A stretch of DNA of 64,000 bases from Hemiscyllium ocellatum (lineage: Eukaryota): positions 38,589,090 through 38,653,089 of the forward strand of contig NC_083435.1 in assembly GCF_020745735.1 (NCBI RefSeq), in the 5' to 3' direction. Position numbers and translations under genes: made by a program. Below are positions 11,200 through 49,364 of the stretch, piece after piece. Within the stretch, counting starts at the first letter, position 1; every line of letters begins with the position of its first letter. The notes beneath the pieces are model-generated. The model did not search any database and was not told the origin of the DNA. It worked only from the letters and a program-made list of their open reading frames with translations.

Positions 11200-12800
11200 T
11201 TTTATCATGGACATTGTAGCCATGCGTGCAGCTGTGTCTCCAGCTCACTCAGTGTGCCCGCAGACTGGATTGTCATTATGTTTGTCTCCCCTTACAAGGC
11301 CCTGATGTACAAACTGAAATGCCTCAGCAGCTGAATGGATTCCAAAACTCAACCACTTCAATCCAAACATCTGAGTGCAGAATACTACAAGATACTGAAT
11401 TCATTCTACAAATGTCATTTGATGGTTTCCTGCATTGAGGTCAATTTTAGTGAAGTGTACTTTTCTGTGCTTTCTCTATTATGTTGTCAGTTGTCATTGT
11501 CTAAAGTCTTTCTCGCTTTATAGTTTATTAAGAGGATAGCAATGCAGATTCTCAGCTGTTTCTCACTCCTACGTTTGTTGGTGACTTAGGGGTAAATATA
11601 GGGCAGGGAGAATGGGTCTGGGTGGGTTACACTTCAGAGAGTTAGTGTGGACTTGCTGGGCCGAAGGGCCTGTTTCCATACTGTAAGGAATCTAATCTAA
11701 TGTGTGGGATGCAAAGTTTAGCCTCATCCTCAACTTTTGAAGTCATTTCAAAGAAATGCTGAGATTCCTCAGTTTGTTTTGAATGTGTTAAGTGTTAGCT
11801 GGGTGTCATTGCTGCACCGTTGGGGATATATTGACATCTATGTACAACTCACCTTCCAGTTTACCAAAGGTAGTAAAGCAGTCAGCGTCCCCACCGTCCA
11901 ACCCCACCGCCCCGTGGCTGCAAACTTCAACTCCCTCTCCCACTCCATCAAGGACACGCAGGCTCTGGGCATCCTCCATCAAACCCTAACCACCCAACGC
12001 CTGGAGGAAGAATGCCTCATTGTCTGCCTCGGGACCCTGCAACTACTTGGGATCAATGTGAATTTCACCAGTTTCCCCATTTCCCTTCCCCCACCTTATT
12101 CCAGTCACAAGCCTCCAACTCGGCACCGCCCTCTTGACCTGTCCTACCTGTCCATTTTCCTTTCCATTTATCTGCTCCTCTCTGATCTATCACCCTCCTG
12201 CCCTACCTCTATCTACCTATCGCCTTCCCAGCTACTTTCCCTCCCAACGCCACCTCCTCCTATTCATCTCTCAGCGCGGACCCACAAGCCTCATTCCTGA
12301 TGAAGGGCTTATGCCTGAAATGTCAATTCTCCTGCTCCTCAGATGCATCGTGAGCAGCTGTGCTTTCCCATCACCACACTGTCAACAGCGAGAAATACAA
12401 GAATGTTATTGGTATTGGTAGGAATTGTATATTTGATGGCAATCCTGTGCACACCTGTTTCAGTGTGAACACAACTGTGTCATATTCACTAGATGTGACA
12501 AACTACAGACTTCATTCTGGTATCTTTAAATCAGAGTGACATTTCAGAAGTTATGAGAAGTTTCAATTGTCTGTCTCTGTTATAAGGAAATTTTTACATT
12601 CTCTGGTTTGAAGTTTATAGTCTCCCAAAACATTTAAACCTGCTCTTGTATCAATCAGAGTTTTCCTGCCTGAGTAGTCGATGGTCACTGTAAGACATGG
12701 CTGATTACTGTATAATAAACAGAACACAAAATTATGATCAGGATCATTTGTCTCTATTATGGTGGCATTCTGTTGACGTTTCACTATGGCATGCATGGGG
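11200..12800 (-). mobile_element. Ancient Gypsy pol remnants (protease about 12630-12680; RT about 11250-11470), interrupted by a Penelope insert
   Basis: KTLIDTRAGLNVLG resembles LIDTGAxxNVL; FTKIDLNAGNHQ...LSFGIHSAAEAFQ resembles Gypsy RT motifs. Confidence 0.55.
11790..12385 (+). mobile_element. Penelope-like element, 3' fragment
   Basis: C-terminus PVAANFNSLSHS...QRLEEECLIVCLGTLQ followed by the CCTGATGAAGGGCTTATGCCTGAAA terminus. Confidence 0.8.
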
Positions 12801-16257: not shown

Positions 16258-19200
16258 TGCCGAGAGGTGTGAGGGATAAGCAAAGGACTGCTGGGAAGGT
16301 GAGTAAAAATGTTTTTGAACAGAGTGACAAGGAGAGAGGGCGGACAGAAACAAGGGCTGCCAGGAAGTTTTTAAGTGGGTGAGATCTAAACCTGAGACCC
16401 TACAAGGTAAGGTCTCACTGCCACCCACCTCCTCTAACTTTACTAAGAGTCCGTAAACTTGGTAAGTTTTCAGGTTTTCTCTTTTATTTATCTTCTCCTT
16501 CTTTGTTTAGACCTGTGCCGGCCTGCAGAGTAGCGGGATACGGATCTTAGGGCAGTTACAAGTTCCTCCTGCAGAAAGTGGTAGGGGAGAGACAGTTCAC
16601 ATGTCTCAGCCGACTACATCTGCGGGAAGTGCATCCAACTCCAGCTCCGCAAAAACCGAGTTCGGGAACAGGAGCTGGAGCTGGATGAACTAAGGATCAT
16701 CCGGGAAGCTGAGGGGAAAATAGAGTGAATGTACAGGGAGGTGATCACTCCCCAGACACAGGATAAGTACAGCTGGGTTACTGTCAGGGGGAGGAAAGGG
16801 AACCGATGGTCAGAGCTGGGATCCCCTATGGCCGCTCCCTTCAGCAATAAGTATACCGTTTTGGATACTGCTGGTGGGGACAGCCTACCAGGGGTAAGCC
16901 ATAGTTGTCAGGTCTCTGGCACTGAGCCTAGCACTGTAGCTCAGAAGGGAAGAGGGAGGGGATTGGAAAAGCGCTAGTGGTAGGGGACTCAATAGTTAGA
17001 CAGATTAACAGGAGATTTTGTGGTCAGGAATGGGACTCCTGGAAGATATGTTGCCTCCCTGGTGTCAGGGTCCGGGATGTCGCCGATTGGTTTACAGGAT
17101 TCTGAAGGGGGAGGGTGAGCAGCCAGAAATCGTGGTACATATTGGCACCAATGATATAGCCAGGAAAGGGACTGAGGATCTGTAAAGTGACTACAGAGTT
17201 AGGTTGGAAGCTGAAGAGCAGGATGAGTAGAGTAGTGATCTCAGGTTTGCTACCGGTGCCACGAGATAGTGAGGTAAGGAACAGTCAGCGAATGCTGCTT
17301 AACACATGGCTGCGAGGGTGGTGCAGGAGGGAGGGCTTCAGATAGCTAGACCATTGGGATACTTTCTGGGGAAGGTGGGACCTATACATGAAGGATGGGT
17401 TACACCTGAACTGGAGGAACACAAATGCCTGGGTGGGAGATTTGCTCGTGTGATTCTGGAGGGTTTAAACTAATTTGGCAGGGGGGTGGGAATCAGAGCC
17501 ACATGTCTGAGAGGGGGACAGTTGCAGATGGGACAGTGACAGGATGTATTGAATCTATCAGGAAGGTTTCTCACGTGATGAAACAAAGGGATCGGTTAAA
17601 GTGTATCTGCTTTAATGCAAGGAGTGTCAGAAATAAGAGTGACGAACTTAGCGCATGGATCAGTACTTGGGGAGACATTGTTGTGGCCATAACGGAGACG
17701 TGGGTGTCACAGGGGCAGGAATGGTTGCTTGATGTTCCAGGGTTTAGAACATTTAAAAAGAACAGGGAGGGTGGAAGAAGAGGAGGGGGTGTAGCATTGC
17801 TAATCAAGAGTGCATCACAGCTACAGAAACAAAGGTTGTTGAGGAAAGTTTGTCTACTGAGTCAGGATGGGTGGAAGTTAAGAACAGCAAGGGAACAGCC
17901 ACCACATTGGGGGTTTTCTACAGACCACCTCATAGCAGTAGAGAGATTGAAGAACTCATAGGAGGGCAGATTTTGGAAAAATGCAGATGTAACAGGGTTG
18001 TTGTTATGGGTGATTTCAACTTTCCCAATATTGACTGGAACCTCCTTAATGCAGATGGTTTGGATGGAGCCATATTTGTCAGGTGTGTTCAGGAGGGTTT
18101 CCTTACTCAGTATGTAGACAGACCGACGAGGGGAGGGGACATTTTGGATTTGGTGCTCGACAATGAGCCAGGACAGGTGTCAGATCTCGCAGTGAGAGAA
18201 CATTTTGGTGACAGTGATCACAACTGCCTCACATTTAGCATAGCCTTGGAGACGGAAAAGAGCAGTTACCGAGGGAAGATATTTAACTGGGGAAAAGGAA
18301 ATTATGACGCTATCAGACAGGAGTTAGGAAGTACAGATTGGGAGCAATTGTTCCACAGAAAGGGCATAACAGACATGTGGAGACTGTTGAAGGAGCAGTT
18401 GTTGTGAGTGATGCACAAATTTGTTCCTCTGAGACAGGTAAGAAGGGGTAAGGTTAAGAAACCTTGGATGATGAGAACGGAGGGATAGTGGAGGGAACTT
18501 GTGCATGGAGTTTGAGCAGATAGGGGAAGCCTTGAATGAGATTTTTGCTTTGATTTTCACTAAGGAAAGGGACGTTGTTGTGAATGAGAACTTTGAGGAG
18601 CTGGGATACAGTCTTGACCAGATCAAGATTGATGAAGTTGATGTGCTAGAAATTTTGGAAAACATTAAGATTGATAAGTCCCCAGGGCCAGACCAGATTT
18701 ATCCTAGGCTGCTCCAGGAGGTGAGAAAGGAGGTTGCTAAGCCGTTGGCAAGAATATTTGCCTCCTCACTTTCCACAGGAGTCGTACCAGAGGACTGGAA
18801 GGAGGCGAATGTTGTTCCACTTTTCAAGAAGGGTAAAATGGAAATCCCTGGCAATTACAGACCAGTCAGTCTTACATCTGTGGTCAGCAAAGTTGTGGAA
18901 AGAATTCTGAGGGATAGGATTTATGACTATTTGGCAAAGCATAGTGTAATTGAAGGCAGTCAGCATGGCTTTGTGAGGGGCAGGTCATGCCTCACAAATC
19001 TTATTGAGTTCTTTGAGGAGGTGTTAAGACAGGTCGACGACATTCGAGCAGTGGATGAGGTGTATATGGATTTCAGCAAGGCATTTGATAAGGTTCCCCA
19101 TGGTAGGCTCATTCATAAGGTCAGGAAGTATGGGATACAGGGAGATTTGGCTATCTGGATTCAGAATTGGCTGGCTGACAGAAGGCAGAGAGTGGTTGTA

Positions 19201-20208
19201 GATGGAAAATATTCTGCCTGGAGGACAGTGTTGAGTGGGGTCCCGCAGGATGCTGTTTTGGGCCTCTACTCTTTGTAATTTTTATAAATGACTTGGATGA
19301 GGAGGTTAGGGGTGGGTTAGTAAAATTTGCAGATGACACAAAGGTTGGAGGTGTCATCGATAGTATAGAGGCTACTGCAGGCTGCAGCGCTACATCGGCA
19401 GGATGCTGAGCTGGGCTGAGAAATGGATAAATGCAAAGTGATGCATTTTGGAAGGTCGAACTCGAATGCTGAATATAGGATTAAAGACAGGATTCTTGGC
19501 AGTGTGGAGGAACAGAGGGATCTGGGTGTGCAGGTACATAGATCCCTCAAAGTTGCCACCCAAGTGGATAGGGTTGTTAAGAAAGCATATGGTGTTTTGA
19601 CTTTCATTAACAGGGGGATTGAGTTTAAGAGCCATGAGGTTATGCTGCAGCTCTACAAGTCCCTGGTGAGGCCACACTTGGAATATTGTGTCCAGTTCTG
19701 GTTGCCCTATAATAGGAAAGATACAGAGGCTTTGGAGAGGGAGCAAAGAAGGTTTACCAGGATGCTGTCTGGATTGGAGGGCTTGCCTTATGAAGAAAGG
19801 TTGAATAAACTCGGACTTTTCTCTCTGGAGAGAAGGAGGAAGAGAGGAGGCCTGATAGAGGTGTACAGGGTAATGAGGGGAATAGATAGAGTCAATAGCC
19901 AGAGACTTTCCCCAGGGCAGGATTGACTGGTATGAGAAGTCATAGTTTGAAGGTATTAGGAGGAAGGTATAAAGGAGACATCAGAGGTAGGTTTTTTACA
20001 CAGAGAGTTGTGATTGCATGGAATGTGTTGCCAGTGGTGGTGGTGGAAGCAGTGTCATTGGGGACATTTAAGCAACTGCTAGGCATGCACATGGATAGCA
20101 GTGAGTTGAGGGGTGCATAGGTTGGGTTATTTTATTTTACATTAGGATTAATCCTCAGCACAACATTGTGGGCCAAAGGGCCTGTTCTGAGCTGTACTTT
20201 TCAATGTA
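16258..20208 (+). mobile_element. Near full-length CR1 LINE inserted in Gypsy gag
   Basis: ORF1 zinc finger and SGNH-esterase motifs (GDSIVR, HIGTND); ORF2 CFNARSVRNK, AITETW, MGDFNFPNIDW, YMDFSKAFDKVPH, KFADD; CR1 3' tail. Confidence 0.92.
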
Positions 20209-23812: not shown

Positions 23813-26301
23813 TGAGAATCAGAGGTGTTCGGTGGCAGGACTGAAACATAGAAGTGCATGTTTGCATTATTATTGTCAATGCAATGTATATTTGTGTTGT
23901 AGTGTACTAACAGTGTAAGATTAAGGCGGTTTTAAAAATGAAGCCATCTTTCGATATTGATGGTTCATTTTTTAAAAATATTTTTTAATTGAAAAACAGA
24001 TTTTTAAATATTACAACAAATACAAAACAATACAATTCAAAACAAATGTAAAAAAAACAAACCACCCTCCTACAAATGTATAAACATATATTTTAAAAAA
24101 TTTTACAACCCCAACTAAAGACTTAACTAAATAAATAATAACTGACAAATAAATAAAAATAATACAGCTCAGCCAAACAAAACACTAACTTTCAAATATG
24201 GAGAGTATTAATTTTCCCATACTCATGTATCCGCAGATCACCCCTCCCTGGGGATACTGGATTTGTAAAACACAATCATTACGGCTATATAAAAGCCCTT
24301 ATTAGTGTGGCAGACAGATCTGTGTCCAGGTAATCCAAAAAGGGCTGCTACGTCTTATAGAAATTCTCAGTTTTGTGGTGTAGTATATTTGTGAGACAGT
24401 CCAAGGGGATATGCTCCATAACAACCCGACAGGCCTGGGTGAGTTTCCCAACTGAACAAAATATTCTTTCTTGCGCAGGAAGTGAGGATATTGACAAGTT
24501 TTTTCTTATACGCATCTTCAGGGAACAGACTGGGCAGGCCAAGGAGAAGACAGAGCGGGTCCTTCTCCACCCTTATACCCAAACTCCCCTCCATTGCACA
24601 CGCTACAAGACCAGAGACATGCTGAAGATACCCCTGGTTTAAATTTTGACAAACGATCCATAGCCAAGTGGACCCTGTGGAGAATCTTCAACTGTAAAGC
24701 ATGGGTCCGATTGCAAATTGATATCTTCCTTGCATTCTCCCAAATATCGTCCCGTGTCTCTGAGGATTCAACACCCAGCTCTCTCTCCTACACCCTGCAG
24801 AGTCGATCAAATGCATCTGAGGGGGCACCCCCCAGTTGATGATATAAAATGCTGACAGAAAGTGTACTCTTACTACTGAGTACCCTCCTCTCTATGTAGG
24901 ATTTGTAGGGATCAGTCAAAAGTGTAGTCTTTTATTGAATAAAATCTCTAACTTGGAAAATATGAAAGAGGTCCCTATTAGATAGCTTGTATTTCTGTGC
25001 TAACTGATCTAAGGACATCATTGTGTCTCCATGAAATAAATCACCCAGGCAAGACACACCCCTAGCTGCCCAATGTTTGAATCCTGAATCTATCATCCCC
25101 GGTTGAAAACTCGGCATACCCACTATAGGTGTAAGAGAAGATGTTTTGCCAATATTACCTTCCCTCTACCGAATAGCCCTCCATGCTTTAACGGTATTGA
25201 TAGCTATTGGGTTATGGCATTATTCCCTAACCATCCTCATTTTGTCCAAAAACAGCAAGTTAATAAGGGGGCGCCCTGCCTGAGAGGTTTCAATACTAAC
25301 CATATTGAAAGAGGGTTCCCACAAGCCCAGTTACACACACACGATAAAAGCGAGCTTAGTTGGTATCTTTTAATGTCTGAGAGATCCACTCCCCGGAGTC
25401 TGTGAGGCAATTGCAGTTTAGCTAATTTAACAATTTAGCACTTACAATGTCAAATAAAAGAGCTGAACTAGCCATTCAGTCTCCTGAACATTTGCTTATC
25501 GAAAATTAGGGGGAGCATCCAGATAGGGTACAACAACTGAGGGAGAATATTCATCTTAATAAGCACTATCCGACCCAACCACGAGACCGGAAGCGCATCC
25601 CATCTTTGAAGGTCTTGTTTGATTTTGTCAATGACTGAACAAAATTGGCTTTAATCAACAGATCAAGAATTGGAGTGATGAATATACCCAAATACACAAA
25701 CCCCCCCACCCCCGTGAACGCTTAAAAGGAAATAGAGATTTACCCTTAAGACCTAGCACCTTTGTGAGACCACCTTTGTGAGATTTGACAAAAAAATGAG
25801 GACATCTTCCACATACAATGAAATCTTATGCGATTTTGACCACACATTTAGAGCCTGTATATTGGGATCTCTACTAGTGACCTCTAGGTAAAAACAATGA
25901 CTGCAGATGCTGGAAACCAGAGTCTAGCTTAGCCAATGGTTCAATCACCAGTGTAAATATTCACATCAATGGTGAAAGGGGACAGCCCTAAAAATGTTAA
26001 AATTGCTTGATCGTACCCCATTGGTGAGGACGGCAATGAAAGGGTCACTGTAGAGAACCTTTACCCATCTTATAAAGGCTATACCCAAGCCAAACCGCTC
26101 CAGAGTATAAAAAAGGTACGACCCACTCAACTCAGTCAAATGCCTCTCTGCATGTAGAGAAATCACCAATCCCTGTACAGACTGTTATTGACACACTTGA
26201 ATTACATTAAACAGCCTCCTAACATTATTGGAGGACCTGCAGCCATTTATGAAGCCTGTCTGGTCCTTTTTAACGAAAGACGTTAACACAAGTCTCCAGC
26301 C

Positions 26302-27514
26302 TGAAAATGTGTTGCTGGAAAAGGGCAGCAAGTCAGGCAGCATCCAAGGAGCAGGAGAGTCGACATTTCGGGCATGAGCCCTTCTTCAGGAATGAGGAAA
26401 TTGTGTCCAGCAGGCTAAGATAAAAGGTAGGGAGGAGGGACTTGGGGGAGGGGTGTTGGCAATGCGATAAGTGGAAGGAGGTAAAGGTGAGGGTGATAGG
26501 CCGGAGTGGGGGTGGGGTCAGGAAGAAGATTGCAGGTTAGGAGGGCAGTGCTGAGTTTGAGGGTTGGGACTGAGACAAGGTGGGGGGAGGGGAATTGAGG
26601 AAACTGGAGAAATATAAGTTCATCCCTTATGGTTGGAGGGTTCCTAGGCGGAAGATGAGGCGCTCTTCCTCCAGCCGTCGTGTTGTTATGGTCTGGCGAT
26701 GGAAGAGTCCAAGGACCTGCATGTCCTTGGTGGAGTGGGAGGGGGAGTTGAAGTGTTGAGCCACGGGGTGGTTGGGTTGGTTGCTCTGGGTGATCCAAAG
26801 GTGTTCTCTGAAACATTCCGCAAGTAGGCGGCCCATCTCCCCAATATAGAGGAGGCCACATCGGGTGCAGCGGATGCAGTAAATGATGTGTGTGGGGGTG
26901 CAGGTAAATTTGTGACGGATATGGAAGGATCCCTTGGGGCCTTGGAGGGAAGTAAGGGGGAGGTGTGGGAGCCCAAGTTTTACATTTCTTGCGGTTGCAG
27001 GGGAAGGTGCCGGGAGTGGAGGTTGGGTTGGTGGGGGGTGTGGACCTGACGAGGGAGTCACGGAAGGAGTGGTCTTTTTGGAAAGCTGATAGGGGAGGGG
27101 AGGGAAATATATCTCTGGTGGTGGGGTCCGTTTGGAGGTGGCGGAAATGACGACGGATGATACGATGTATATGGAGGTTGGTGGGGTGGTAGGTGAGGAC
27201 CAGTGGGGTTCTGTCTTGGTGGCGATTGGAGGGGCGGGGTTCAAGGACGGAGAAGTGGGAAGTGAAGGAGATGCGGTGGAGGGCATCGTCGATCACATCT
27301 GGGGGGAAGTTGCGGTCTTTGAAGAAGGAGGCCATCTGGGCTGTACGGTATTGGAACTGGTCCTCCTGGGAGCAGATGCGGCAGAGATGAAGAAATTGGG
27401 AATATGGGATGGAGTATTTACAGGGGGGCAGGGTGGGAGGAGGTGTAGTCTAGGTAGCTGTGGGAGTTGGTCAGTTTATAGTAAATGTCAGTGATGATTT
27501 AGTTGCCCAAGATC
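26302..27514 (-). mobile_element. Penelope-like element (RT C-terminus + GIY-YIG) nested in the L1
   Basis: IIYCIRCTRCGLLYIGEMGR..REH (GIY-YIG); PLVLTYHP; 11-bp direct repeat AGTCTCCAGCC at 26291-26301 and 27515-27525. Confidence 0.9.
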
Positions 27515-34330: not shown

Positions 34331-34875
34331 TGTCTTCCCTCTTATCCTGTCCACTTTGGCTTGTCTGTGAAAAATAGATTGTGAAACATTACAGTCATTA
34401 TGGTGGGTGATTCTGGTGGTGATAACTTTGGCAGTTGAGCAGTTGTTTGGAGATTCTAGGTTCTGCAATTAGCTGGAAGGAGTTTGTCCAGTTTCCTTCA
34501 GCAGTTTGCTAACTGGGCTCGCATTCAGTGTCAGAGAAGTTGAGTGTCCAGATCTGGATGGGACAGATTCATTATGTGTGAGGATGAGGGAGCTCTGGGG
34601 GTGAATGAAATTTGAGTGAGGCTGCTGGTGAATAGGCCAAGGTTCAGTGAAACTAAAGCATGATGGAGTGAGGGTTCAGAGTGATGGTGGAAAGGGTGAA
34701 GTTGATTGAGAAAGGGTGCAGGGTGGTAGCTTCAAACTCAAGGGTTAGTGTGAGACGTTCCAGGGACAGAGCTATGGCTTTAAAAGTCATCACAGAGTTT
34801 ACATCACCAGACTGATCCAGGGCTCTACAGAAGACATGGGGCATTCCAAAGTCAACAACTTCCAAATGCATCAAG

Positions 34876-35612
34876 AAGGTTACCAATGAGGAATACAGAA
34901 GGTTACCAATGGGGAATACAGAGGATTTCCAATGGGGAATGCAGAAGGTTACCAATGGGGAATACAGAAGGTTACCAATGGGGAGTACAGAAGGTTACCA
35001 ATGGGGAGTACAGAAGGTTACCAATGGGGAATGCAGAAGGTTACCAATGGGGAATGCAGAAGGTTACCAATGGGGAGTACAGAAGGTTACCAATGGGGAG
35101 TACAGAAGGTTACCAATGGGGAATGCAGAAGGTTACCAATGGGGAATGCAGAAGGTTACCAATGGGGAGTACAGAAGGTTACCAATGGGGAATGCAGAAG
35201 GTTACCAATGGGGAATACAGAAGGTTACCAATGGGGAGTACAGAAGGTTACCAATGGTGAGTACAGAAGGTTACCAATGGGGAATACAGAAGGTTACCAA
35301 TGGTGAGTACAGAAGGTTACCAATGAGGAATACAGAAGGTTACCAATGAGGAATACAGAAGGTTACCAATGGGGAATACAGAAGGTTACCAATGGGGAGT
35401 ACAGAAGGTTACCAATGAGGAATACAGAGGGTTACCAATGAGGAATACAGAGGGTTACCAATGGGGAATACAGAAGGTTACCAATGGGGAATACAGAAGG
35501 TTACCAATGGGGAGTACAGAAGGTTACCAATGAGGAATACAGAGGGTTACCAATGAGGAATACAGAGGGTTACCAATGGGGAATACAGAAGGTTACCAAT
35601 GAGGAATACAGA
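34876..35612. repeat. 23-bp minisatellite, about 32 copies
   Basis: Unit AAGGTTACCAATG(G/A)GGA(A/G)T(A/G)CAG. Confidence 0.97.
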
Positions 35613-36057
35613 AGAGTCAATCAACCTGTGAGCTTCACATGCCAGTCTGGCAGCCAGAGGTCTGTGTTTTACAGCAACTGCTAGTTTTTTTTAGGAATTG
35701 AGGCAATTTATTGGAGAAATTGGTCAGGTTTAGGGACCCTAGCAGCATTCACAGACTGAAAGGCCTTTCTCTCTCAATGTGTAGCTGGTCTGACATCACC
35801 AAAACCAAAACCCTCAGGTCTGCGCTCACTTCCCAGGGAGTCACATTCATCTATTCAAGATAAATGTATTAATCCTACAAGGAAATTATTTTCATTTGTT
35901 TTGATGTGATTTGATTTATTGTCCCATGTACTTAAATAAGTGAAAAAGCTGTACAGACAGATCATGGTAATCAAGGACATACAGATCATAGGGTGAGAGA
36001 AACTTGGGCTGAGTAAGGCAGACAGGTGAAGATCTGGACCCCCAGGGGGGTGGTCTC

Positions 36058-37277: not shown

Positions 37278-37323
37278 GGGGTGGTATGGTGGCTCAATGG
37301 TTAGCTCTGCTATCTCAGAGCTC
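37278..37323 (+). mobile_element. HE1-type SINE, 5' half (A box), split by the ERV
   Basis: GGTGGCTCAATGGTTAGC; the SINE continues at 46210. Confidence 0.8.
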
Positions 37324-38112
37324 TGTTGAGACGGAAACCGAATGGTCTCGTCTCCACGTGTTCGTTGGAAGGAGAGATCAAACCGGCTAGAGTTTGGAGC
37401 AAAAACACCGTTTATTACAGAATCAAGACTGGCAAACTATACAACGAATTCAAAAGCATGCAAATTCGTTGGAGAAGGCGTTCTGTCTCTCCCTTCGGAT
37501 CTGGTGCAGTTATACTTCGCGCTTCCTCGAGTTCCCGGTCAGGTTCCCCTTGTTCGGCTCTTTCATTGGTCGGTTCACCTGTCTGTGAATGGATTAGTGT
37601 CTCTACTGGCTGCCCCGAGATACCTGTCCAGCTCCTGCTGTGCTGAACAATGGGCAGACATCCTGGGTTCGGCAGTTTCCGATCTTGTAAATTAAAAGTT
37701 TATTGTTTGGAAGGGTTTCCTCATTGCTATGTGTCTGGCTGTCTGGGCGTTCACAATAGTTCTCCATAGTTGAATATACAGATATTATCATTTAACATAG
37801 GACCCGAATGAGTTTGACGTCAGCGGAGGCATTAGCAAGTACTTTATCAATCAAGTGTAGTATCGGTGCGATTTACACTATCCGATAGTTACCGGTTTCC
37901 TTTATTAACAATGAGAGTGTAACAGGATGATCTGAAACTGACGGACATGTTCTAATCCCCCAGGAATGTGGCCCCAGGCAGACAGTCCTGCAGTGGCTGG
38001 GTTTATTTTACATGGCTGTGTTTTAGCTGGTATCTGACAGTGTCTGCTTTAATAATGGTGCTCCCCTCCCTAGCCCCAATGTAGGTACCCCGATAGCAGA
38101 TTCTCCCCAACA
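37324..38112 (-). repeat. ERV 3' LTR (789 bp)
   Basis: Near-identical to 45422-46209; minus-strand CCAAT, TATAAC (37509-37514) and AATAAA (37411-37416). Confidence 0.95.
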
Positions 38113-38123
38113 TTCCCTCCTTT
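38113..38123 (-). promoter_or_regulatory. ERV polypurine tract
   Basis: Minus-strand AAAGGAGGGAA abuts the TGTTG of the 3' LTR. Confidence 0.85.
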
Positions 38124-38199
38124 GGCCTCGAAAGAGGCCACACCCCCTTATCCCGTAAGGAACGCAACCCCACGAGGCGACCGGTGTCCGGTGTTGTAC

Positions 38200-39760
38200 C
38201 GACCAGACTCACCGGTTCTAAGGAGACAGTCATATGGGGATGAAAGGTGCCCTGAAAAACGCGCCGCTACACAATTAAGCAATAGATGGTCACAGCTGCA
38301 TGCTAAGCTAAACTAATCGTTGAAGTAATTGAGGCAGTGTCTGCAGAAATAACGAAAAGCACAGGATTAGACAAGCATTGCAATAAGTCATTCAGAGCTG
38401 GCGAAATGTACGCGAGTGCGTTAGAATGAGTAAGCCATTTAGTAAACGCAAGTCTGTAGTCCAAAGAGCCGGCAAATGTAAGTAGGTGTTGTAAGTTTGG
38501 AAAGGGAGTAGGAACAGCCTGGTACCAGCAGTTAGGTACCCGCTAGAGATCTGAAACCCAGTGTGAAACTGTACTGTGCCCCGGTGGTCCCGTAGATCAG
38601 TATGCTCCAGCGAGCAGCAGTGCTGTCCAACCGTCCGACACGGATGGAAGCAGGCAGAACTTGCATCAAACGGAGACGAACGGAGGCCACGCGTTCCGAT
38701 GTCAATGCGCGACTGTGCCTGTCTTAGGTTGTCCCTCGCCCGAGGGATCTTACCCGTCATTGGCTAACCAGTCGTGCTGCATTGAGTAATAGATGGTGAC
38801 ATCCATTTCACCGCCACAAGGACAGGCGTGGGCAGCTCAGTAGCATGGTCAGTGGCCTCCGAGAGTGGCTGAGGCCAGTCAGGAATATTGGACAGTCCGC
38901 AAGGGCCGCTTGCGAGAACAGCAGTGTTTCGATTGCCAGGGCGCACAGTACATCTCCCCCACCCACTGTTATGGAAGGATCAATTCACATATTCCCAATT
39001 TAAACGGGCAAAATAAATAAGTGGGGGCTCTTTGGACAGCCAGGCTTCATTCAATGTGGATGAAGATGAAAAGTTAGTCATGGGTACAACAGGATCAAAT
39101 GAATTCGGAAGAAAACCATTGAGAGAGCTGACATGCACCGGAGAGATAGCATGTACTACACCCGAATCGCGAGCTCACGCAAAGGCGGTAGTAGACCAGT
39201 GGAGAGACTAACTGGCAGGTCCCCCATCACCCGCCCTTAATGCAACCGGCCGCAAGCTAAAAACCCCGTATCATGGCTCACGAGTGGAAGTCGCATTACA
39301 GCATGTATTGGATATGTCCCTGTCCGTTTGTAGGAGGTCACGGACAGGCTGTCGTGTTGTCAGAGTTGGTGGCAGCGGCGCCTCCTGGTGGAGCTCAACA
39401 TATGGGGGTCCGGTTGAAAAGTAATGATACCTCATCACCTTTAAATCAGTGAGATGGGGCTGTGGGAATGCAGTAAAAAGGAGTCCCCGCATCACCAGGG
39501 TGATATATGGCGGGGTCAGTCAGGAACTATGTGACTACTATGGGAAGTAAAGTGTTGTGTTGCATAGGGTGTTTGGGGTGGCATGTCTGGGAGACCGGAA
39601 TGGACGGGAGGCGGTCCCCAAAATCTCCAGTCAGTACTCCTGAACATAAGGTCTGTGCTCATGTGGACTGTCAAATGCAACCAGGAAGAGTGTACTCAAC
39701 CATTTGTGCAAGAGGAATGGGGGGGGGGGGGGCAGATATAAAAAGACAATGGTGAAAATA
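38200..39760 (-). pseudogene. env remnant (SU-TM)
   Basis: FYICP..C near the start; a long frame with stops and N-glycosylation sequons; CRTVGQHCC (CX6CC) at 38614-38640; hydrophobic tail at about 38270-38450. Confidence 0.55.
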
Positions 39761-39899
39761 ATGAAGGTAGTCTGAAAGCCTTAACCATTCTTATGAGTTG
39801 CGGACCTGTACGTGGCAGTATTTCAATGAAAAATATCCACCAAAAGGAGTCACATAAATTAGAGAGAACTCTGTGTGAGATAGACGGAGTGGTTTCACG

Positions 39900-40700
39900 T
39901 AAGGGAAGGGGTACAACTTTACACAAAGGAAGTCAGAGGGATTCGTGATCTCAAATCAGAGAGAGAAAAAAAGCTCCCCAGCATGGGCTGCCACAAAAAA
40001 GCAGTCGAGGCAGGGGTAGCCAGATTATACTATAGGTGTTTTAATGTTCGTCGAATGCTGAAGAGGCAGAGGAAAAATGTAAAAAACGTAATCATGACAC
40101 TGGTCCAGTGTCGGTGAGGTAATTGTGGGGAGCAGTCACGCAAAAGGTGTCAAGTCGCAATATTCTGACAAAGTTGAAATCAAGTGTGCGCAGACTGTGG
40201 AAGACAATTTGTAGGATAATCCGTGTCCATTTGAGCAGCAGCACTACACGGGGTAGATGAAAGTCGGGACACTGATACAAATGCAAGATAGTACGAGTGG
40301 CAGTTATGACTCGGTGGGAATGTGTGCTAGCAGCTGCAGGAGCGCAGGCGCCTGTATGTTTTAAAACGCAATGTGTGAAGAGCAAAAACATTCGTCCAGG
40401 AGTTGTGTCGAAAAAAAATGGAGTAAGTCCCTCGAGAGGGAAGTGGGATTGGTAATAGTGAGAAGGGAACCACAATAGACTGCATAGGGGAAGGCAAACG
40501 GTACGCTTTGATAATGCACAGTAAGGGACACAAGTAGTTTCGATTAGCACACCGGGGAACTGCCGGTGCTCGGGGCGCACAACCAATGGTGTTGTCGTAG
40601 GACAATCGTTCGATGAGGCGCCCAAGGAGACCGTTTAGTATAAAGGTGGAAATGATGAGGATCCCCATCAACTCTGTGGCAATAGGACAATAGAGCAGGT
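39900..40700 (-). pseudogene. Retroviral integrase remnant
   Basis: FFDTTPG (about 40409) and SNGHGLSYKLSSTVCAHL (about 40230) lie about 58 codons apart, resembling the DTFSGW and SDNGPAF DDE residues; frameshifted. Confidence 0.45.
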
Positions 40701-41049
40701 AAATTTCCACCGTGTGGTTAGGGAAGACACAGCGCAGGGGATCCCCTAACCTCTCGGGGGCGCAGCATAAGCCTCAAGGCAGCTGGGACCCCCCTTTTGC
40801 AGGCAGGGCGGATTGTCGCCCCCAGACACTTGGGTAGGATATTGGAGCGGACCGCGACTGTAACTCAGAATATGGGTAATATCAGAAAAAGGCGCCTACG
40901 CAAGGGATAAAGACAAATTTAGACGAAAAGGGAGTTGAATCACCAACTAAAAAGGCACAGTCCTACTTGGACGGCGATTTGCCTGCTCACAGCGGAGTCC
41001 ATGATTAACAAGGTCGACCTCCCACGAGAAGGCCCAATGAAGAGTTTAG

Positions 41050-42420
41050 ACAGCAGAATAAAGTACAAGAAGAGCAAAGATATCAGTGAAACAGACCCAT
41101 TTCGGTGTAGAAGGGCAGCAACCCAAACCCTACGTAGAAACCGTGCCAAGGTGGGGTTGCATGATCCCCTCTCTTTCTGCACCTCCCCGTCAGGTCCCGT
41201 CTCATCGAGTGACTTTAGGGATATATTAGGTTGCGCCGACCTGGAGCAATGAGAGAAGTGGTGCGTGCGGTGGCCTATGTGTTTCCAGCCAGCTCAGTAT
41301 AAGATATGATGATGATGATTATGGAGAGGGGGACAATGTAAAACTCTGGGCAATTAGGAGATTTGTGGTGGGACGAAATTGGACTGTTTGCCTGAGGGGA
41401 CTTGTCCCCCCAAACGAGATACAGAACGAGAGGTGCAAGTATAATCCTTGTGTATGCAAGAACCTGTGTGTGTGAAGGGCCGTGTGTCATAGCCAAAAGA
41501 GAATGCGCAGGTGCTGCGGGCAGATTGGACTTCATCCCTGTGTAAAGGAGAGGGAGAGAGAGAGTATCATAAAAGGACGGTCAGACAGGTCAGGACAGAA
41601 ATTGTCTGTGTAGCACTTTCCTCCGTTTGACACTTGAGGATTTGATCAGTTTGCGGGTAGTAACAGCCCTTAAAAGATACCCCGGGAAAAGAATCATAAA
41701 GGAACCTGGTGATCCTGCCGTTCTCAGCGTGAACCTGCGCCTTGCAAAAGATATGAACGGATGAGTTGGAGAGAACTACTCGCAGTTGAAGAGACTGAAG
41801 GATTTGGGCAGGAGCTGAGCTTTGATCCCTGTGGGAGGCGATTGTATGTATAATGCCTTCAAGCAAAAGGCGAAGGCAAAGTGCTGCCGACACTGTAGGT
41901 GCGGTGGAGGGCAAAAGAGAGCGTCAGCCAGGACTGTAACAGAGCAAAACGATAGGCAGGCGTGAGCGCCCACAGTGCAACAGAGGGGTCGGGAACCTTT
42001 AAGTTTACAGTGGCCGTGGCTCCATTTATTATTTGGAGATGACGTGAGGAATCCTGGTAGCAAACCTCAGGGAGCATGAGAGTGGGGAAAGAAGCCATTT
42101 AGTTTTTTGGAGACGACATGACGAACCCTGGGAGGAAACCTCAGGGAGCATAAGACTTTGGAAAGAAGATGGGGCGCAGAGCACGGCAGTGGAAGCATAG
42201 TGAGTGAAATGCCCTAATGGAGAGATGAGGCCAGAAGATGAGTTACTGTGTCCTGGTAGAAAACCTCAGGGAGCGTAAAACCTTAAAAAAAAGAGATGGA
42301 GCGTAAGGATCCACGGATCCTCAATTCAATGAGAACCAGGTGAATTCAATGCAGGCTGAGTGAAGGACAAAGCTGAGACGACCTCAGATCCGGCGGTGAC
42401 CATAAAGTGTGTAGGTTTGG
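41050..42420 (-). pseudogene. Retroviral protease, RT and RNase H remnants
   Basis: KPTHFMVTAGSEVVS (PR, catalytic Asp lost, 42371-42418); LQIINGAT..VPDP, VLADALFCPPPHLQCRQHFAF and HYTYNRLPQG (LPQG at 41826-41837); FYTDGS restored by removing 2 nt at about 41093-41112. Confidence 0.8.
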
Positions 42421-42699
42421 GAGGAGACGATGAAGGGGTGTGACCACGGCGTGGGGGATGGAGAGCGGGGTTGTAGGATAAGGCAGTACAATCAGCAAGA
42501 GGAGTCTGTACTAGATTTCAACGGGAAGGTTTGGTACTGACTGGCAGTTACAGGTTGCATGTTAAACGCATCGGAGAGTGTAGCTTCAGCCAGGTAGACT
42601 GGCTGGCATCTTCACCCCGCACGGTTGTCAATACCCGCTTTAGGGACTGGAAATGGCAGTGTCTGTGGCAGGAGTAGCTCAACCCTCCCTAGCCGCAAA

Positions 42700-44560
42700 C
42701 TTGAGGAGGGGGGGATAAGTAGGAGGAGGAAATTGCTTTAAAATGAGCGTCCATAATGCTTTAGCGAAAGAAAAAATCTGTGGACTTGGGAGAAAGGATA
42801 AAAATGGGTTCGTGAGAAGGGGCAGAAAAATGTGGAGGGCATAGACGGAAGAAGGAGTAGGTGGGCCCCCCCCCTCGTTCTTGGCACTTTGTGAACACGA
42901 GGGGAAAAGGGATGGCCTAAACAATCATGTCGGCGGACAAAAAGATGAGTGAGCGGCCGCGAGGAAGAGAGATGGGCCAAGGACCCTGCTGTGTGCTGAG
43001 TAGCACGTCCTAATTGGAGGCCTGAGGCCTGTGACCAGCGGGGGAAAAAGAGAGAGAGAGACAAAAATAAGTGGGGTGGGGGATATTTGGGCAGTGGGAC
43101 GGCCAAACAGTGGACATACAAAACATTGTAAATGAAAAACGCACAGTATGGCGATACGGCAATGCGCATGTTGTTGGTCGGGACGTTATAGTTAATAGTA
43201 AAAGGTACAACCTGTCGAACAAAATGTGGTTAGAGGCATGATTCATATCGACATCCCAGTAACTGAAGAGGACCTGTTCATCGAGTAATGCCATGGAGTA
43301 GGGCAATGACGCTTGAGAGACCCATCGGTGTAGTGGTGGCGCGGTAGTTGAGGTAATGGGGTGGCGGAACGTCCGCAGGCGAGCAGCCCCTTCTAGACTG
43401 TGCAATCCTGCCAAGAGTGAGTATTCGCGCCAAAAGCGAACGGGCACCGCCCCAACTGAGCGTTTGCGCCAAAAGTCAGCTGGCCCCGCCCAACCTGAGC
43501 CTTCGTGCCAAAAGCAAGAAAGCCCGCCAAGAACTAAGGTGACCCGCCCAGAGAAGGGTGACCCGCCAAAACTAGGGTGAGCACGGGACACCCCGGGATT
43601 TACCGTCTTAGGATTCCACAACCGTAGTGTTATTAAAATAAAGGCTCAACCATCCCTTCCTGCGCCCCCTCCCTACATCCAGGTATTCCTTTACAAGTAT
43701 AAGAGTAATTAAACGTGATAGTGGGGGGACAAGCGGTATTTAATCCTAAAAATCAAGACGAGACTATGGAGAAAAATCCCAGACCATTAAGTGATCAATC
43801 CCAAACCGCTAAGTGTAGGGAACAATACTCACGTACTCCGACAGCAGTAAAACTGATTTTGGCTCACTCAGGCTGTCGGCGACGGTCCACTGTACACCGA
43901 GACCTGGGATGAAACATTTGCTGCGACACCTCCGTTCGCCACGTCTGTTAAAAATCACTGCACTCACTCACTCACTCCCTCTCTCACTGGGCCGGCCCCA
44001 CACTGGTTTTCATCCACATACATGCCAATCCATGCATACTGTCGGTGTGTCCGTACTCTCGTCTCAGCCTGTCGCAGTCCCCTGTCCCCAGTTTTAGTGA
44101 CATGTTTGGCAGGGGCGTCCGAAATGACTGGGGCTGTGGTGGAGGTACAGTGGCCCCCTTGCCACTGCGGGTTCAATGTTACTAACAGTTTCGTCTTCCA
44201 CCCCAGGGATTCATCGGCGGTCGGTGGTGCCCAATCAGTAGGGGATTTCCCTAGGGCTATTGTTTGCCGCACTGAATATTGCGGCGAGAATAGGAGACCG
44301 TTTAAAATCTTGGTCATTAGCGCCGTATCTGTGAAGGTCTCTTTTAGTCTCGTCAATATCAGGTCTTTTTGGGCGGGCGCTTGGTTAAATACTTGATCCA
44401 GTGCTGTCTTGTGCACTGTTACACTGTCCAGTAATAAATGAGCATGCCAAGTTACGTCTGTGCCAACCGTGAGGTGCCACCAGGGCACTCCGGGGCGTAA
44501 TGGTCGAAATTGGGTCATTTTTGGTGGTCCAAAGTTCAAGTCCCCCATGACGGATCTCAC
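42700..44560 (-). pseudogene. Probable gag remnant
   Basis: Position between the leader and protease; 198-aa and 203-aa open stretches; only weak capsid-like motifs. Confidence 0.45.
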
Positions 44561-44818
44561 CTGGTGGGTACCGCTTTAAACCCAGTGCGTTTTCAAAAGC
44601 CTGACCTTCGCGTGGCAGATTTCTGCTCTTAACAACCGGTCTAAGGCAAACGCCTGTGCAGGTAAACCCTATCCAGGAGATGAGATCCGCCCTCTGTCCC
44701 CTTAGGATGCTAGCAGCGAGTGTGTCTATCGATAGTTGTCAGAGATAAAGTGCTTACTAAAAAAGAAAGGATCCAATCAGTCAAGTGCGGTCAGCGCTGT
44801 ATTAATTAATTTCAGAAA

Positions 44819-45095
44819 GCGTCCAGGCTCCGTAAGCCACGCTTTACCTTAACTCAGAAAGCTGCGTCCAGGATCCGAAATCCACGCATAAACTTTACTC
44901 AAAAACCCGCGTCCAGGATCCGAAATCCACGCGTAAAACTCAAACTCAAAAAACTGCGTCCAGGATCCGAAATCCACGCATTAACTTAACTCAAAAACCG
45001 CGTCCAGGATCCGAAATCCACGCGTAAAACTCAACTCAAAAACCGCGTCCAGGATCCGAAATCCACGCGTAAAACTCAACTCAAAAAACTGCGTA
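44819..45095. repeat. About 45-bp tandem repeat, 6 copies, in the ERV 5' leader
   Basis: Unit GCGTCCAGGATCCGAAATCCACGCGTAAAACTCAACTCAAAAACC. Confidence 0.95.
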
Positions 45096-45401
45096 TTAAC
45101 GTAAGGCTAGCCATGGATCAATTAGTCACTTCAGTACCGCGAGAACAGGCAGGTATTAGTGAAGAAGTGAGAAAATAGCTTACCAGTATGGACTCTGCAA
45201 CGTTGCTGCCAAACTGATTTAAAAGTACTGTTTGTGTTGGTGAGGATCAGGGAGCAGACAAAGACTGACTAACTAAAAAATTTTACCTACTGGAAGTCTT
45301 TGCTTTAACAGGCGCTTCCTCACCTTTTAAAAGTTCGGCTGAAAGTTTGTCTGCCCTCCGGTCCGCCAACGTGGCCAACTTGCGGTCGTCTCTTTCCCTT
45401 C

Positions 45402-45419
45402 CCACGGTCAGGCTCACCA
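45402..45419 (-). promoter_or_regulatory. ERV primer-binding site (tRNA not assigned)
   Basis: TGGTGAGCCTGACCGTGG starts 2 nt after the 5' LTR. Confidence 0.7.
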
Positions 45420-45421
45420 TC

Positions 45422-46209
45422 TGTTGGGACGGACCCGTAGGGTCTCGTCTCCACGTGTTCTTTGGAAGGAGAGATCAAACCGGCTAGAGTTTGGAGCAAA
45501 AACACTGTTTCTTACAGAATCAAGACTGGCAAACTATACAACGAATTCAAAAGCATGCAAATTCGTTGGAGAAGGCGTTCTGTCTCTCCCTTCGGATCTG
45601 GTGCAGTTATACTTCGCGCTTCCTCGAGTTCCCGGTCAGGTTCCCCTTGTTCGGCTCTTTCATTGGTCGGTTCATCTGTCTGTGAATGGATTAGTGTCTC
45701 TACTGGCTGCCCCGAGATACCTGTCCCACTCCTGCTGTGCTGAACAATGGGTAGACATCCTGGGTTCAGCAGTTTCCAATCTTGTAAATTAAAAGTTTAT
45801 TGTTTGGAAGGGTTTCCTCATTGCCATGCGTCTGGCTGTCTGGGCGTTCACAATAGTTCTCCATAGTTGAATATACAGATATTATCATTTAACATAGGAC
45901 CCGAATGAGTTTGACATCAGCGGAGGCATTAGCAAGTACTTTATCAATCAAGTGTAGTATCGGTGCGATTTACACTATCCGATAGTTACCGGTTTCCTTT
46001 ATTAACAATGAGAGTGTAACAGGATGATCTGAAACTGACGGACATGTTCTAATCCCCCAGGAATGTGGCCCCAGGCAGACAGTCCTGCAGTGGCTGGGTT
46101 TATTTTACATGGCTGTGTTTTAGCTGGTATCTGACAGTGTCTGCTTTAATAATGGTGCTCCCCTCCCTAGCCCCAATGTAGGTACCCCGATAGCAGATTC
46201 TCTCCAACA
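45422..46209 (-). repeat. ERV 5' LTR (788 bp)
   Basis: About 18 differences from the 3' LTR, counted by eye. Confidence 0.95.
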
Positions 46210-46480
46210 GCACCAAGGACCTAGGTTCAATTCCACCCATAGGTGACTATCTGTGTGAAGTTTGCACATTCTCCTTGTGTTTGCATGGATTTCTTCCACT
46301 GTCCAAAGATGTGCTGGTTAGGTGGAATGGCTATGATGAATTGCCTATCATGTTCAGGTATGTGCAGGCTAGGTGGATTAGCTATGGGAAATTTAGGGAA
46401 AGGGTGGGATGCTCTTTGGAGGGTTGGTGTGAACTTGATTGGCTGAATAGCCTGCTCTCAGACTGTAGGGATTCTATGAA
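46210..46480 (+). mobile_element. HE1-type SINE, 3' part (B box and CR1-derived tail)
   Basis: GGTTCAATTCC...GTGACTATCTGTGTGAAGTTTGCACATTCTCC. Confidence 0.8.
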
Positions 46481-46509
46481 TAATTTCTCTGACAGAATCG
46501 TAAGTATTT

Positions 46510-47395
46510 AAAAATGTGTTGCTGGAGAAGTGCAGTAGGTCAGGCAGCATCCAAGGAGCAGGAGAATCGACGTTTCGGGCATAAACCCTTCTTCAGGAAT
46601 GAGGAGGGTGTGCCAAGCTTGCTAAAATAAAAGGTAGGGAGGGGGGACTTGGGGGAGGGGCGTGGGGAATGCGATATGCGGAAGGAGGTTAAGGTGAGGG
46701 TGATAGGCCGGAGAGGGGGTGGGAGCGGAGAGGTCGGGATGAAGATTGCAGGTTAGGAAGGTGGTGCTGAGTCTGAGGGTTGGGACTGAGATAAGGTGGG
46801 GGGAGGGGAAATGAGGAAGCTGGAGAAATCTGAGTTCATCCCTTGTGGTTGGAGGGTTCCTAGGCGGAAGATGAGGCGCTCTTCCTCCAGCTGTCGTGTT
46901 GCTATGGTCTGGCGATGGAGGAAGCCAAGGACCTGCATGTCCTTGGAGGAGTGGGAGGGGGAATTGAAGTGTTCAGCCACGGGGTGGTTGGGTTGGTTGG
47001 TGCCTGGGAACCCTCCAACCACACGGGATGAATGCAGATTTCTCCAGCTTCCTCATTTCCCCTCCCCCCACCTTGTCTCAGTCCCAACCCTCAGACTCAG
47101 CACCGCCTTCCTAACCTGCAATCTTCTTCCTGACCTCTCCGCCCCCACCCCACTCCGGCCTATTACCCTCACCTTGACCTCCTTCCACCTATCACATTCC
47201 CAATGCCCCTCCCCCAAGTCCCTCCTCCCTACCTTTTATCTTAGCCGGCTTGGCACACCCTCCTCATTCCTGAAGAAGGGCTTATGCCCGAAACATCGAT
47301 TCTCCTGTTCCTTTGATGCTGTCTGACCTGCTGCGCTTTTCCAGCAACACATTTTTAAGCTGATCTCCAGCATCTGCAGCCTTCACTTTCTCCTA
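46510..47395. mobile_element. Penelope 3' fragments arranged as an inverted pair
   Basis: About 46510-46866 is complementary to about 47003-47365; GIY-YIG C-terminus HPVAEHFNSPSH...EEERLIFRLGTLQP. Confidence 0.85.
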
Positions 47396-49364
47396 GCATC
47401 GTAAGTATTCTCAGCTTTTAATGCTCTTATCCAACAATCAAAGTTACTTTGTATAACTCTTTCAAACTCAGAATAAGCTTATCCAGACTGTTCCCATAAA
47501 TTCCAAAACTTCTGTCTGTATGCTTTGGGAAACAACTCATTCATGTTTGGAACATGATTTGGAATATGTTTGGAATAGCCCTTTTCACCTTATAATCCCA
47601 AGAACATTGCTCCAACTGGGATACATAACTCTCTTGTGCTTTAGCAGTTAATTTGGTCATTCTTCTGAATCTGCAAGGGTTCCATTCCTCAGAACCCTTC
47701 CGAATGATCACATTCGCCACTGCAGAACTTGATAAAAATAGAGGTTAAAAATCGCAGATATATGATTTTTGCCCGCGGATGTTGATTTTTGTTGTTATTT
47801 ATTGTTATGTCCAACCCGTCCATGCCCACCAGATATCCCAACCCAATCTCGTCCCATTCCCAGCATTTGGCCCATATTCCTCTAAACCCTTCCAATTCAT
47901 ATACCCATCCAAATGCCTTTTTAATGCTGTAATTGTACCAGCCTCCACCACATCCTCTGGCAGCTCATTCCATACACGTACCACCCTCTGTGAAAAAGTT
48001 GTTTCTTAGGTCCTTTTTATATCTTTCCCCTCTCACCCCGAACCTGTACCCTCTAGTTCTGGGCTCCCCCACTCTGGGGAAAGGACCATGTCTATTTATC
48101 CTATCCATGCCCCTCACTATTTTGTAAACCTCTATAAGGTCACCCTTCAGCCTCCGACGCTCCAGGGAAAACAGCCCCAGCCTGTTCAGTCTCTCCCCGT
48201 AGCTCAAATCCTCCAACCCTGGCAACATCCTTGTAAATGTTTTCTGAACCCTTTCAAGTTTCACAACATCTTTCCGATAGGAAGGAGACCAGAATTGAAC
48301 GCAATATTCCAACAGTGGCCTAACCAATGTTCTGTACAGCTGCAACATGACCTCCCAACTCCTGTACTCAACACTCTGACCAATAAAGGAAAGCATACCA
48401 AATGCCTTCTTCACTATCCTATCTACCTGCGACTCCACTTTCAAGGAGCTTTGAACCTGCACTCCAAGGTCTCTTTGTTCAGCCACACTCCCTAGGAACT
48501 TACCATTAAGTGTATAAGTCCTGCTAAGATTTGCTTTCCCAAAATGCAGCACCTCGCATTTATCTGAATTAAACTCTATCTGCCACTTCTCAGCCCATTG
48601 GCCCATTTGGTCCAGATTCTGTTGTAATCTGAGGTAACCCTCTTTGCTGTCCACTACACCTCCAATTTTGGTGTCTTTTGCAAACTCACGAACTATATGT
48701 CCTATGTTCTCATCCAAATCATTTATGTGAATGACAAAAAATAGAGGACCCAGCACCGATCCTTGTGGCACTCCACTGGACACAGGCCTCCAGTCTGAAA
48801 AACAACCCTCCACCACCACCCTCAGTCTTCTACCTTTGAGCCAGTTCTATATGCAAACGGCTAATTATCCCTGTATTTCATGAGATCTAACCTTGCTAAC
48901 CAGTCTACCATAAGGAACCTTGTCGAACACCTTACTGAAGTCCATATAGATCATATCTACCACTCTGCCCTCATCAATCCTCTTTGTTACTTCCTCAAAA
49001 AACTCAAATCAAGTTTGAGAGACGTAATTTACCACACACAAAGCCATGTTGACTGTCCCTAATCAGTTCTTGCCTTTCCAAATACATGTAAATCCTTTCT
49101 GTCAGGATTCCCTTCAACATCTCACTTACCTCCATTGTCAGGCTCATTGGTCAATAGTTCCCTGGCTTGTCCTTATCTTTCATAAACAGTGGCACCATGT
49201 TAGTCAACTAATGATACAAATATCTCAGTAATGGGCTCAGCAATCACTTCCCTCGCTTCCCACAGAGTTCCTGGGTACACCTGAGCAGATCCTGGGATTT
49301 ATTCACCTTCATGTGAGTTCAGCCATCCAGCACCTCCTACTCTGCAATATGGCCAAATTTAAAA

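Follow-up and report, generated by a model that had tools for sequence, protein, structure and literature searches.

A probable copy of a non-autonomous long terminal repeat retroelement in the genome of Hemiscyllium ocellatum

Background

Among retroelements bounded by long terminal repeats (LTRs), the non-autonomous ones are familiar from mammals and plants but have barely been described in cartilaginous fishes. ETn with MusD, VL30 with MLV, and MaLR are all understood as helper-dependent (PMC6466679). The subject of this report is an insert at positions 37324-46209 of a 64,000-nucleotide (nt) stretch of DNA from Hemiscyllium ocellatum (assembly GCF_020745735.1, contig NC_083435.1, positions 38,589,090 to 38,653,089 of the forward strand). 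This whole stretch is called the window below, and positions are counted from its first letter. We read the insert as probably one copy of an LTR retroelement that is non-autonomous and is oriented along the minus strand. It carries an apparently complete set of cis-acting signals, the primer site being a candidate, without recognisable coding capacity for reverse transcriptase (RT) or integrase. Elements of this kind are already known, as ETn, VL30, MaLR and LARD-like elements.

Mouse ETn has LTRs, a primer site, a polypurine tract (PPT), a non-coding inner region and young copies, and it needs the proteins of a coding-competent relative (PMC6466679). The H. ocellatum element resembles it in its LTRs, its PPT, its youth and an inner region without recognisable replication genes, has a candidate primer site, and would likewise depend on a helper. 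ETn is a class II element, however, proven to be multi-copy, and traces of retroviral homology led to its partner. The element described here is known from one copy, has no retroviral trace and contains one intact open reading frame (ORF). Mouse VL30, which is copied by the proteins of a helper, is likewise non-autonomous; its LTRs are of retrovirus type and its inner region spans several kilobases (kb) of non-coding sequence (PMC6466679). In contrast to our element, it is tied to a known gammaretroviral helper, and the inner region here is longer (7.3 kb). MaLRs, which are linked to ERV-L, are short and occur in very high numbers, whereas the element here is large.

In plants, LARD and TR-GAG elements combine LTRs, a primer site and a PPT with a long inner domain that contains neither RT nor integrase, and their partners are Ty3 and Ty1 elements. 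TR-GAG keeps a single gag-like ORF. The insert in H. ocellatum is similar to these plant elements in its LTRs, its PPT and its long inner domain devoid of RT and integrase. It differs from both in host, since they were described in plants, and from TR-GAG in that the ORF found here has no match to a Gag family.

A comparison by host is with the endogenous retroviruses (ERVs) of the elephant shark. These CmiERVs also reside in a chondrichthyan and have an LTR divergence of 0.024-0.033, compared to 0.022 here, but they are defined by homology to Pol and Env (PMC4422223), neither of which is found in the present element. Because the elephant-shark ERVs were found through such homology (PMC4422223), elements like the one described here would have been missed.

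Terminal repeats and cis-acting signals

The insert is bounded by a long direct repeat whose two copies lie 8,097-8,098 nt apart, with limits set by local and global alignment. Both copies have the TG..CA ends of LTRs, and the flanking bases form a candidate 4-bp target site duplication (TSD):

37320-37323, no strand: left copy of the candidate 4-bp TSD, GCTC, a 3/4 match to the right copy
37324-38112, minus strand: 3' LTR in the element's own sense, 789 nt, TGTTG..CAACA
45422-46209, minus strand: 5' LTR in the element's own sense, 788 nt, TGTTG..CAACA
46210-46213, no strand: right copy of the candidate 4-bp TSD, GCAC, a 3/4 match to the left copy

The LTRs are 97.7% identical, with a Kimura two-parameter distance of 0.0219. 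They are distinguished by 17 substitutions (11 transitions and 6 transversions, with 6 of the 17 at CpG) and one 1-base indel. These differences are clustered. The longest identical run measures 286 nt (P ~0.007 under even placement); LTR positions 8-293 and 536-698 show no differences, 3.3% of positions 301-540 differ, and so do 7.7% of the last 91 nt. Neither the LTR nor the inner sequence recurs within the 64-kb window, which also has no empty-site paralogue of the insertion site and no run of N. The TSD constitutes weak evidence.

Our conclusion is that the minus strand is the sense strand of the element. Four independent lines give this orientation: a PPT at the edge of one LTR, a TGG-initiated 18-mer past the other, a TATAA that precedes AATAAA, and the strand of ORF1, which is the sole ORF with a relative. 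The features concerned are:

37411-37416, minus strand: AATAAA of the 3' LTR
37510-37514, minus strand: TATAA of the 3' LTR
38113-38123, minus strand: polypurine tract AAAGGAGGGAA, 11/11 purines, adjoining the 3' LTR
38124-38139, minus strand: hairpin with a 6-bp stem, preceding the polypurine tract
43967-44548, minus strand: ORF1, 194 codons uninterrupted by stops between its ATG (44546-44548) and its TGA (43964-43966)
45402-45419, minus strand: candidate primer-binding site (PBS) TGGTGAGCCTGACCGTGG, a TGG-initiated 18-mer located 2 nt past the 5' LTR
45607-45611, minus strand: TATAA of the 5' LTR

On the minus strand a PPT lies directly upstream of the 3' LTR; on the plus strand there is none. 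Promoter and polyadenylation signals occur in U3-R order, as sequence matches rather than expression data, with CCAAT at 544, TATAA at 599 and AATAAA at 697 of the 789 LTR positions. The AATAAA, which is found only in the 3' LTR, is followed by a GT/T-rich stretch and lies ~90 nt from the terminal CA. The resulting layout resembles the usual U3-R-U5 arrangement. A plus-strand reading was considered and rejected. It gives an LTR that has no TATAA, no AATAAA and no purine tract. The 15 nt ahead of its downstream LTR are 47% purine, and its first TGG comes 10 nt past the upstream LTR, within a hairpin.

The candidate PBS was also used as a query. The window holds no transfer RNA (tRNA) gene, and the literature returned only unrelated primer sequences for its string. 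A 15-mer taken from it gave 120 chance matches in metagenomes, 0 of them inside a tRNA.

A preliminary description of this locus, made by reading the sequence, had reported LTRs differing at about 18 of 789 positions, and the alignment agrees with this count while moving the start of the right LTR by one base, to 45422. That description also listed a PPT, TATA, poly(A) signal and PBS. These exist (the PBS as a candidate), all on the minus strand, which it never states. Of its TSD, a candidate 4-bp pair is present at the flanks, with the imperfect match noted above.

Search for retroviral genes

The inner region (38113-45421) was cut into stop-to-stop open segments in six frames, with no joining of frames and no replacement of stops. 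This yielded 175 segments of at least 28 amino acids (aa), 91 on the plus and 84 on the minus strand, and 96-97% of the inner bases are covered by at least one of them. Each segment was scanned singly against Pfam at E up to 1. On neither strand did these 175 segments match a protease, RT, RNase H, integrase, Gag or envelope family. The handful of Pfam matches in the inner region (E 0.035-0.25) are to unrelated families, involve one segment each and are at the level of chance. The same scan serves as its own positive control, since in ORFs elsewhere it finds decayed endonuclease and RT pieces like those of a long interspersed nuclear element (LINE), at 17425-19275 and 47968-48819 of the window.

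A PDB sequence search with the five longest segments (E up to 10) retrieves no retroviral chain, and a word-index protein search with the 211-aa and 180-aa segments finds no relatives. The CCHC pattern is absent from every frame. Short tripeptide and tetrapeptide motifs of catalytic type occur at chance level, and late-domain motifs on the minus strand show no enrichment (4, versus 2.0 +/- 1.4 expected).

Properties of the reading frames point in the same direction. For ~2,436 codons, the plus frames contain 111, 116 and 116 stops and the minus frames 75, 93 and 90, which amounts to one stop per 21-32 codons in every frame. Open-frame lengths are approximately those of dinucleotide-preserving shuffles; the plus-strand maximum (0.03) and the minus-strand top-five sum (0.013) are nominally high. 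Period-3 power equals the background except over ORF1 and in one window near 38.7-39.3 kb, compared to 2-5 for the LINE control.

As far as profile methods can see, pro, pol and env appear to be absent. There is no Pol of ERV class I, no env downstream of pol (from Pfam and from the PDB search with the five longest segments), and no gag with capsid and nucleocapsid domains (neither a Gag family nor CCHC). Because no pro, pol or env is recognisable, breaks in these genes cannot be counted, and in the absence of their remnants there can be neither an RT phylogeny nor a class assignment. The preliminary description had placed protease, RT, RNase H, integrase and env motifs in scattered frames, and had seen genes far more decayed than the LTRs in a near-full-length class I ERV. 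The Pfam scan of the 175 segments recovers none of these genes, so that no recognisable remnants are left to which such decay could be ascribed, and every gene-based feature of class I that was looked for is missing. Reading motifs by eye had suggested remnants of RT, integrase and env that a profile search cannot find.

The locus would be viewed differently if it were a class I (gamma/epsilon-like) provirus of near-full length, with pro, pol and env shattered by frameshifts, stops and deletions yet still recognisable, and copied by a helper in that state. Its LTR structure and its size of 8.9 kb would suit a provirus, a TSD of 4 bp would be in line with class I, and non-autonomy itself is supported. 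However, 0/175 segments contain a retroviral family, even though decayed LINE RT is detected in the same window. The PDB search, the period-3 analysis and the counts of catalytic-type and late-domain motifs, all of which give nothing retroviral, speak against it as well. We regard a shattered class I provirus as quite improbable.

It could also be supposed that intact genes are hidden by an indel-rich or chimeric assembly, and polishing could account for the clustered identity of the LTRs. But frameshift errors would leave pieces that match RT or integrase, and no pieces match. The density of stops in every frame likewise argues against it. An assembly artefact of this type is hardly credible.

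Age and integrity of the insert

The LTRs have ratios of observed to expected CpG dinucleotides (CpG o/e) of 0.62 and 0.71, and the inner region one of 0.71, versus 0.24 and 0.21 in the 10-kb flanks. In 400-nt windows, the inner region varies from 0.37 to 1.55, with most values between 0.55 and 0.96. An inner region old enough for pol and env to have been erased would have lost its CpGs, and the CpG content thus argues that the inner part is young.

Estimates of absolute age depend on the substitution rate. A rate of 2.2e-10 per site per year was assumed for sharks by Han (PMC4422223). With this rate, K = 0.0219 corresponds to ~50 million years; a mammal-like rate gives ~5 million years. The argument turns on substitutions per site rather than on years. 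The decay that could have accumulated per site is ~1% if calculated from the overall divergence of 2.2%, or ~4% if calculated from the most divergent LTR segment (7.7%).

The core inference of the preliminary description, that of a genome already dead at copying which relied on a helper, is sustained and strengthened by these data as far as replication proteins are concerned: the inner region could not have encoded them at integration. The LTR divergence allows only ~1-4% decay, yet there are 75-116 stops per frame and no detectable domain, and the inner CpG o/e is as high as that of the LTRs and ~3x that of the flanks.

A different history, in which an old autonomous provirus decayed in place while LTR-LTR gene conversion homogenised its LTRs, would explain the clustering of LTR differences (a 286-nt identical run with P ~0.007, and segments that differ by 0% and by 7.7%). 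The imperfect TSD is in keeping with it too. In such a case the inner CpG o/e should have dropped to the host level, but at 0.71 it is LTR-like and three times that of the flanks. The PPT and the TGG 18-mer are located outside the repeat, where conversion cannot maintain them, and both are intact. ORF1 is still open over its 194 codons, and the decay implied per copy is only ~4% even for the LTR segment that differs most. Decay in place is very improbable on this evidence. We conclude that the whole insert is young and that, apart from ORF1, it was non-coding at integration.

GC and CpG content shift sharply at the outer edges of the LTRs and not at their inner edges, which indicates that the sequence enclosed by the LTRs differs in character from the host DNA around the insert. 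This shift bears on the question of whether the insert is one element. Two LTRs of the same family, either solo LTRs or the ends of two proviruses, might instead bracket unrelated DNA, or two proviruses might have recombined; inter-element recombination would leave an imperfect TSD of the kind seen here, and the LTRs enclose no recognisable retroviral genes. Against such a composite stand not only the shift in composition but also the position of the candidate PBS and the PPT, which occur exactly at the inner LTR edges and in an orientation consistent with ORF1. We judge a composite of this sort to be improbable.

Leader and inner block

The sequence between the LTRs can be divided, on either side of ORF1, into a leader that contains a tandem array and a long inner block:

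38124-43966, minus strand: inner block of ~5.8 kb without recognisable coding capacity, CpG o/e 0.55-0.96, ~50% GC
44549-45401, minus strand: leader of ~850 nt, from the candidate primer site to ORF1
44819-45094, minus strand: tandem array in the leader, 45 nt x 6, CpG o/e 1.55, the highest of the region

Purines make up 55-67% of the plus strand at 38300-43500, so the sense strand of the element is pyrimidine-rich there. The ORF1 stretch shows the opposite bias, with purines in excess on the minus strand, together with a local period-3 signal. The inner block resembles nothing else in the window and has few internal repeats. No Rfam family reaches its gathering threshold in the window, and the lone Rfam match within the element (E 0.29) was dismissed as chance. 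Two strings in the leader, at 45320-45335 and 44555-44565 on the minus strand, resemble consensus 5' splice sites and might be candidates for such sites.

Copying of the element

A non-autonomous element of this structure would be transcribed from its 5' LTR, and its RNA would be polyadenylated in the 3' LTR. Reverse transcription and integration of this RNA would be performed by the Gag, Pol and integrase of a related autonomous element or virus. Because the element itself encodes no Gag, Pol or integrase, these proteins would have to be supplied in trans. The cis signals kept by the element would be the primer site, the purine tract, the LTR ends and probably the leader.

Several observations weigh against the interpretation of the insert as a trans-mobilised, non-autonomous element. 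Agreement at three or more of four TSD positions is expected by chance in ~5% of cases, and the TSD found here agrees at three only. In strict register, the complement of the candidate PBS does not resemble a canonical tRNA 3' end. Between 31% and 39% of frame-codons reside in segments shorter than 28 aa, which are invisible to the Pfam scan. It is likely that the clustered LTR differences reflect some LTR-LTR conversion, uneven mutation or assembly polishing, and the LTR-based age is thus a minimum. A pyrimidine-rich sense strand such as that of the inner block is unusual for a retroelement RNA. Finally, the notions of a 'family' and of 'trans-mobilisation' are both drawn from one locus.

ORF1 and a stingray protein

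ORF1 is the first sizeable ORF past the leader and is located at the expected start of gag. Its ATG has a purine at -3 and a G at +4. The encoded protein begins with Met-Gly, but the residues after this depart from the usual N-myristoylation pattern. ORF1 was compared exhaustively with 1.84 billion representatives by phmmer, which yielded one true relative (E 4e-13), the 'uncharacterized protein' XP_072894075.1 from the stingray Hemitrygon akajei. The two are 33% identical over ~140 aa, corresponding to residues 507-641 of the stingray protein. Tryptophans and prolines are conserved between them, and ORF1 has diverged as a protein. The preliminary description assigned the element to a chondrichthyan lineage, and the stingray origin of the sole ORF1 relative is consistent with this, although as evidence it is weak.

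Other matches to ORF1 were discarded. The second phmmer match, to a bacterial hypothetical protein, consists of five short stretches only and was taken as spurious. A scan of viral contigs produced four 21-residue matches in unrelated contigs, which were judged to be chance. ORF1 has no match in Pfam or PDB, and no Gag-Pol relative of it is found in protein databases. Exact-protein records are lacking for ORF1, for another inner ORF and for a flanking ORF. The predicted structure of ORF1 and its relative has a mean pLDDT of 40.7, too poor for use. Judging by position only, we would guess that ORF1 may be what remains of the N-terminal part of gag, or may stand in for it.

The stingray protein has a NACHT domain, and its likeness to solved NLRP structures ends at residue ~524. 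The stretch related to ORF1 starts where this likeness stops, and a search with the ORF1-matching part of the protein finds only itself. Since the NLRP likeness stops at the ORF1-like stretch and other relatives are lacking, this stretch is not an ordinary NLR domain. It is read most simply as a repeat-derived exon in the gene model.

The tail of XP_072894075.1 (residues ~507-893) carries a PPPY motif at residue 880. The gene model as a whole could be chimeric, or it could reflect a genuine fusion between an immune receptor and a retroelement-derived domain.

Implications for surveys of cartilaginous fishes

A more far-reaching proposal, which we put forward tentatively and consider rather doubtful, is that cartilaginous fishes harbour a large CpG-rich non-autonomous LTR family with a conserved leader-proximal ORF and ~5.8 kb of non-retroviral cargo, and that this family was recently copied. 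If such a family exists, the 33% identity of ORF1 across the host and the stingray would mark the ORF as old and probably functional. In addition, a stingray NLR immune receptor may have acquired the ORF1 domain as its C-terminal part, in which case the domain would be no mere misannotation there.

As a probable copy of a non-autonomous element, the locus indicates that pol-based screens undercount the activity of LTR elements in cartilaginous fishes. ERV surveys of these fishes have been seeded with Pol and therefore miss such elements. The LTR, the primer site and ORF1 provide handles for finding the family and its helper.

Neighbouring sequence

The remainder of the window contains other repeats. 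A 23-nt minisatellite occupies 34759-35758, 1.6 kb to the left of the element, and comprises ~32 well-kept copies (93% matches) with decayed edges. On the right, beginning 300 bp from the element, a foldback-like repeat (46508-47358) has inverted arms of ~358 nt that are 92% alike; related copies at 26297-26783 and 11892-12378 have 71-89% identity.

The decayed LINE-like element on the plus strand at 17425-19926 retains endonuclease and RT pieces in several ORFs (Exo_endo_phos and RVT_1). An RT-bearing fragment on the minus strand at 47965-48819 (RVT_1, E 3e-10) has an 89% inverted copy of 596 nt at 60163-60758, ~11 kb away. Sequence between 52000 and 54000 has an extreme GC skew of -0.61 at 54% GC and includes a 296-aa ORF (52764-53654) without a Pfam match; this region is probably a low-complexity repeat.

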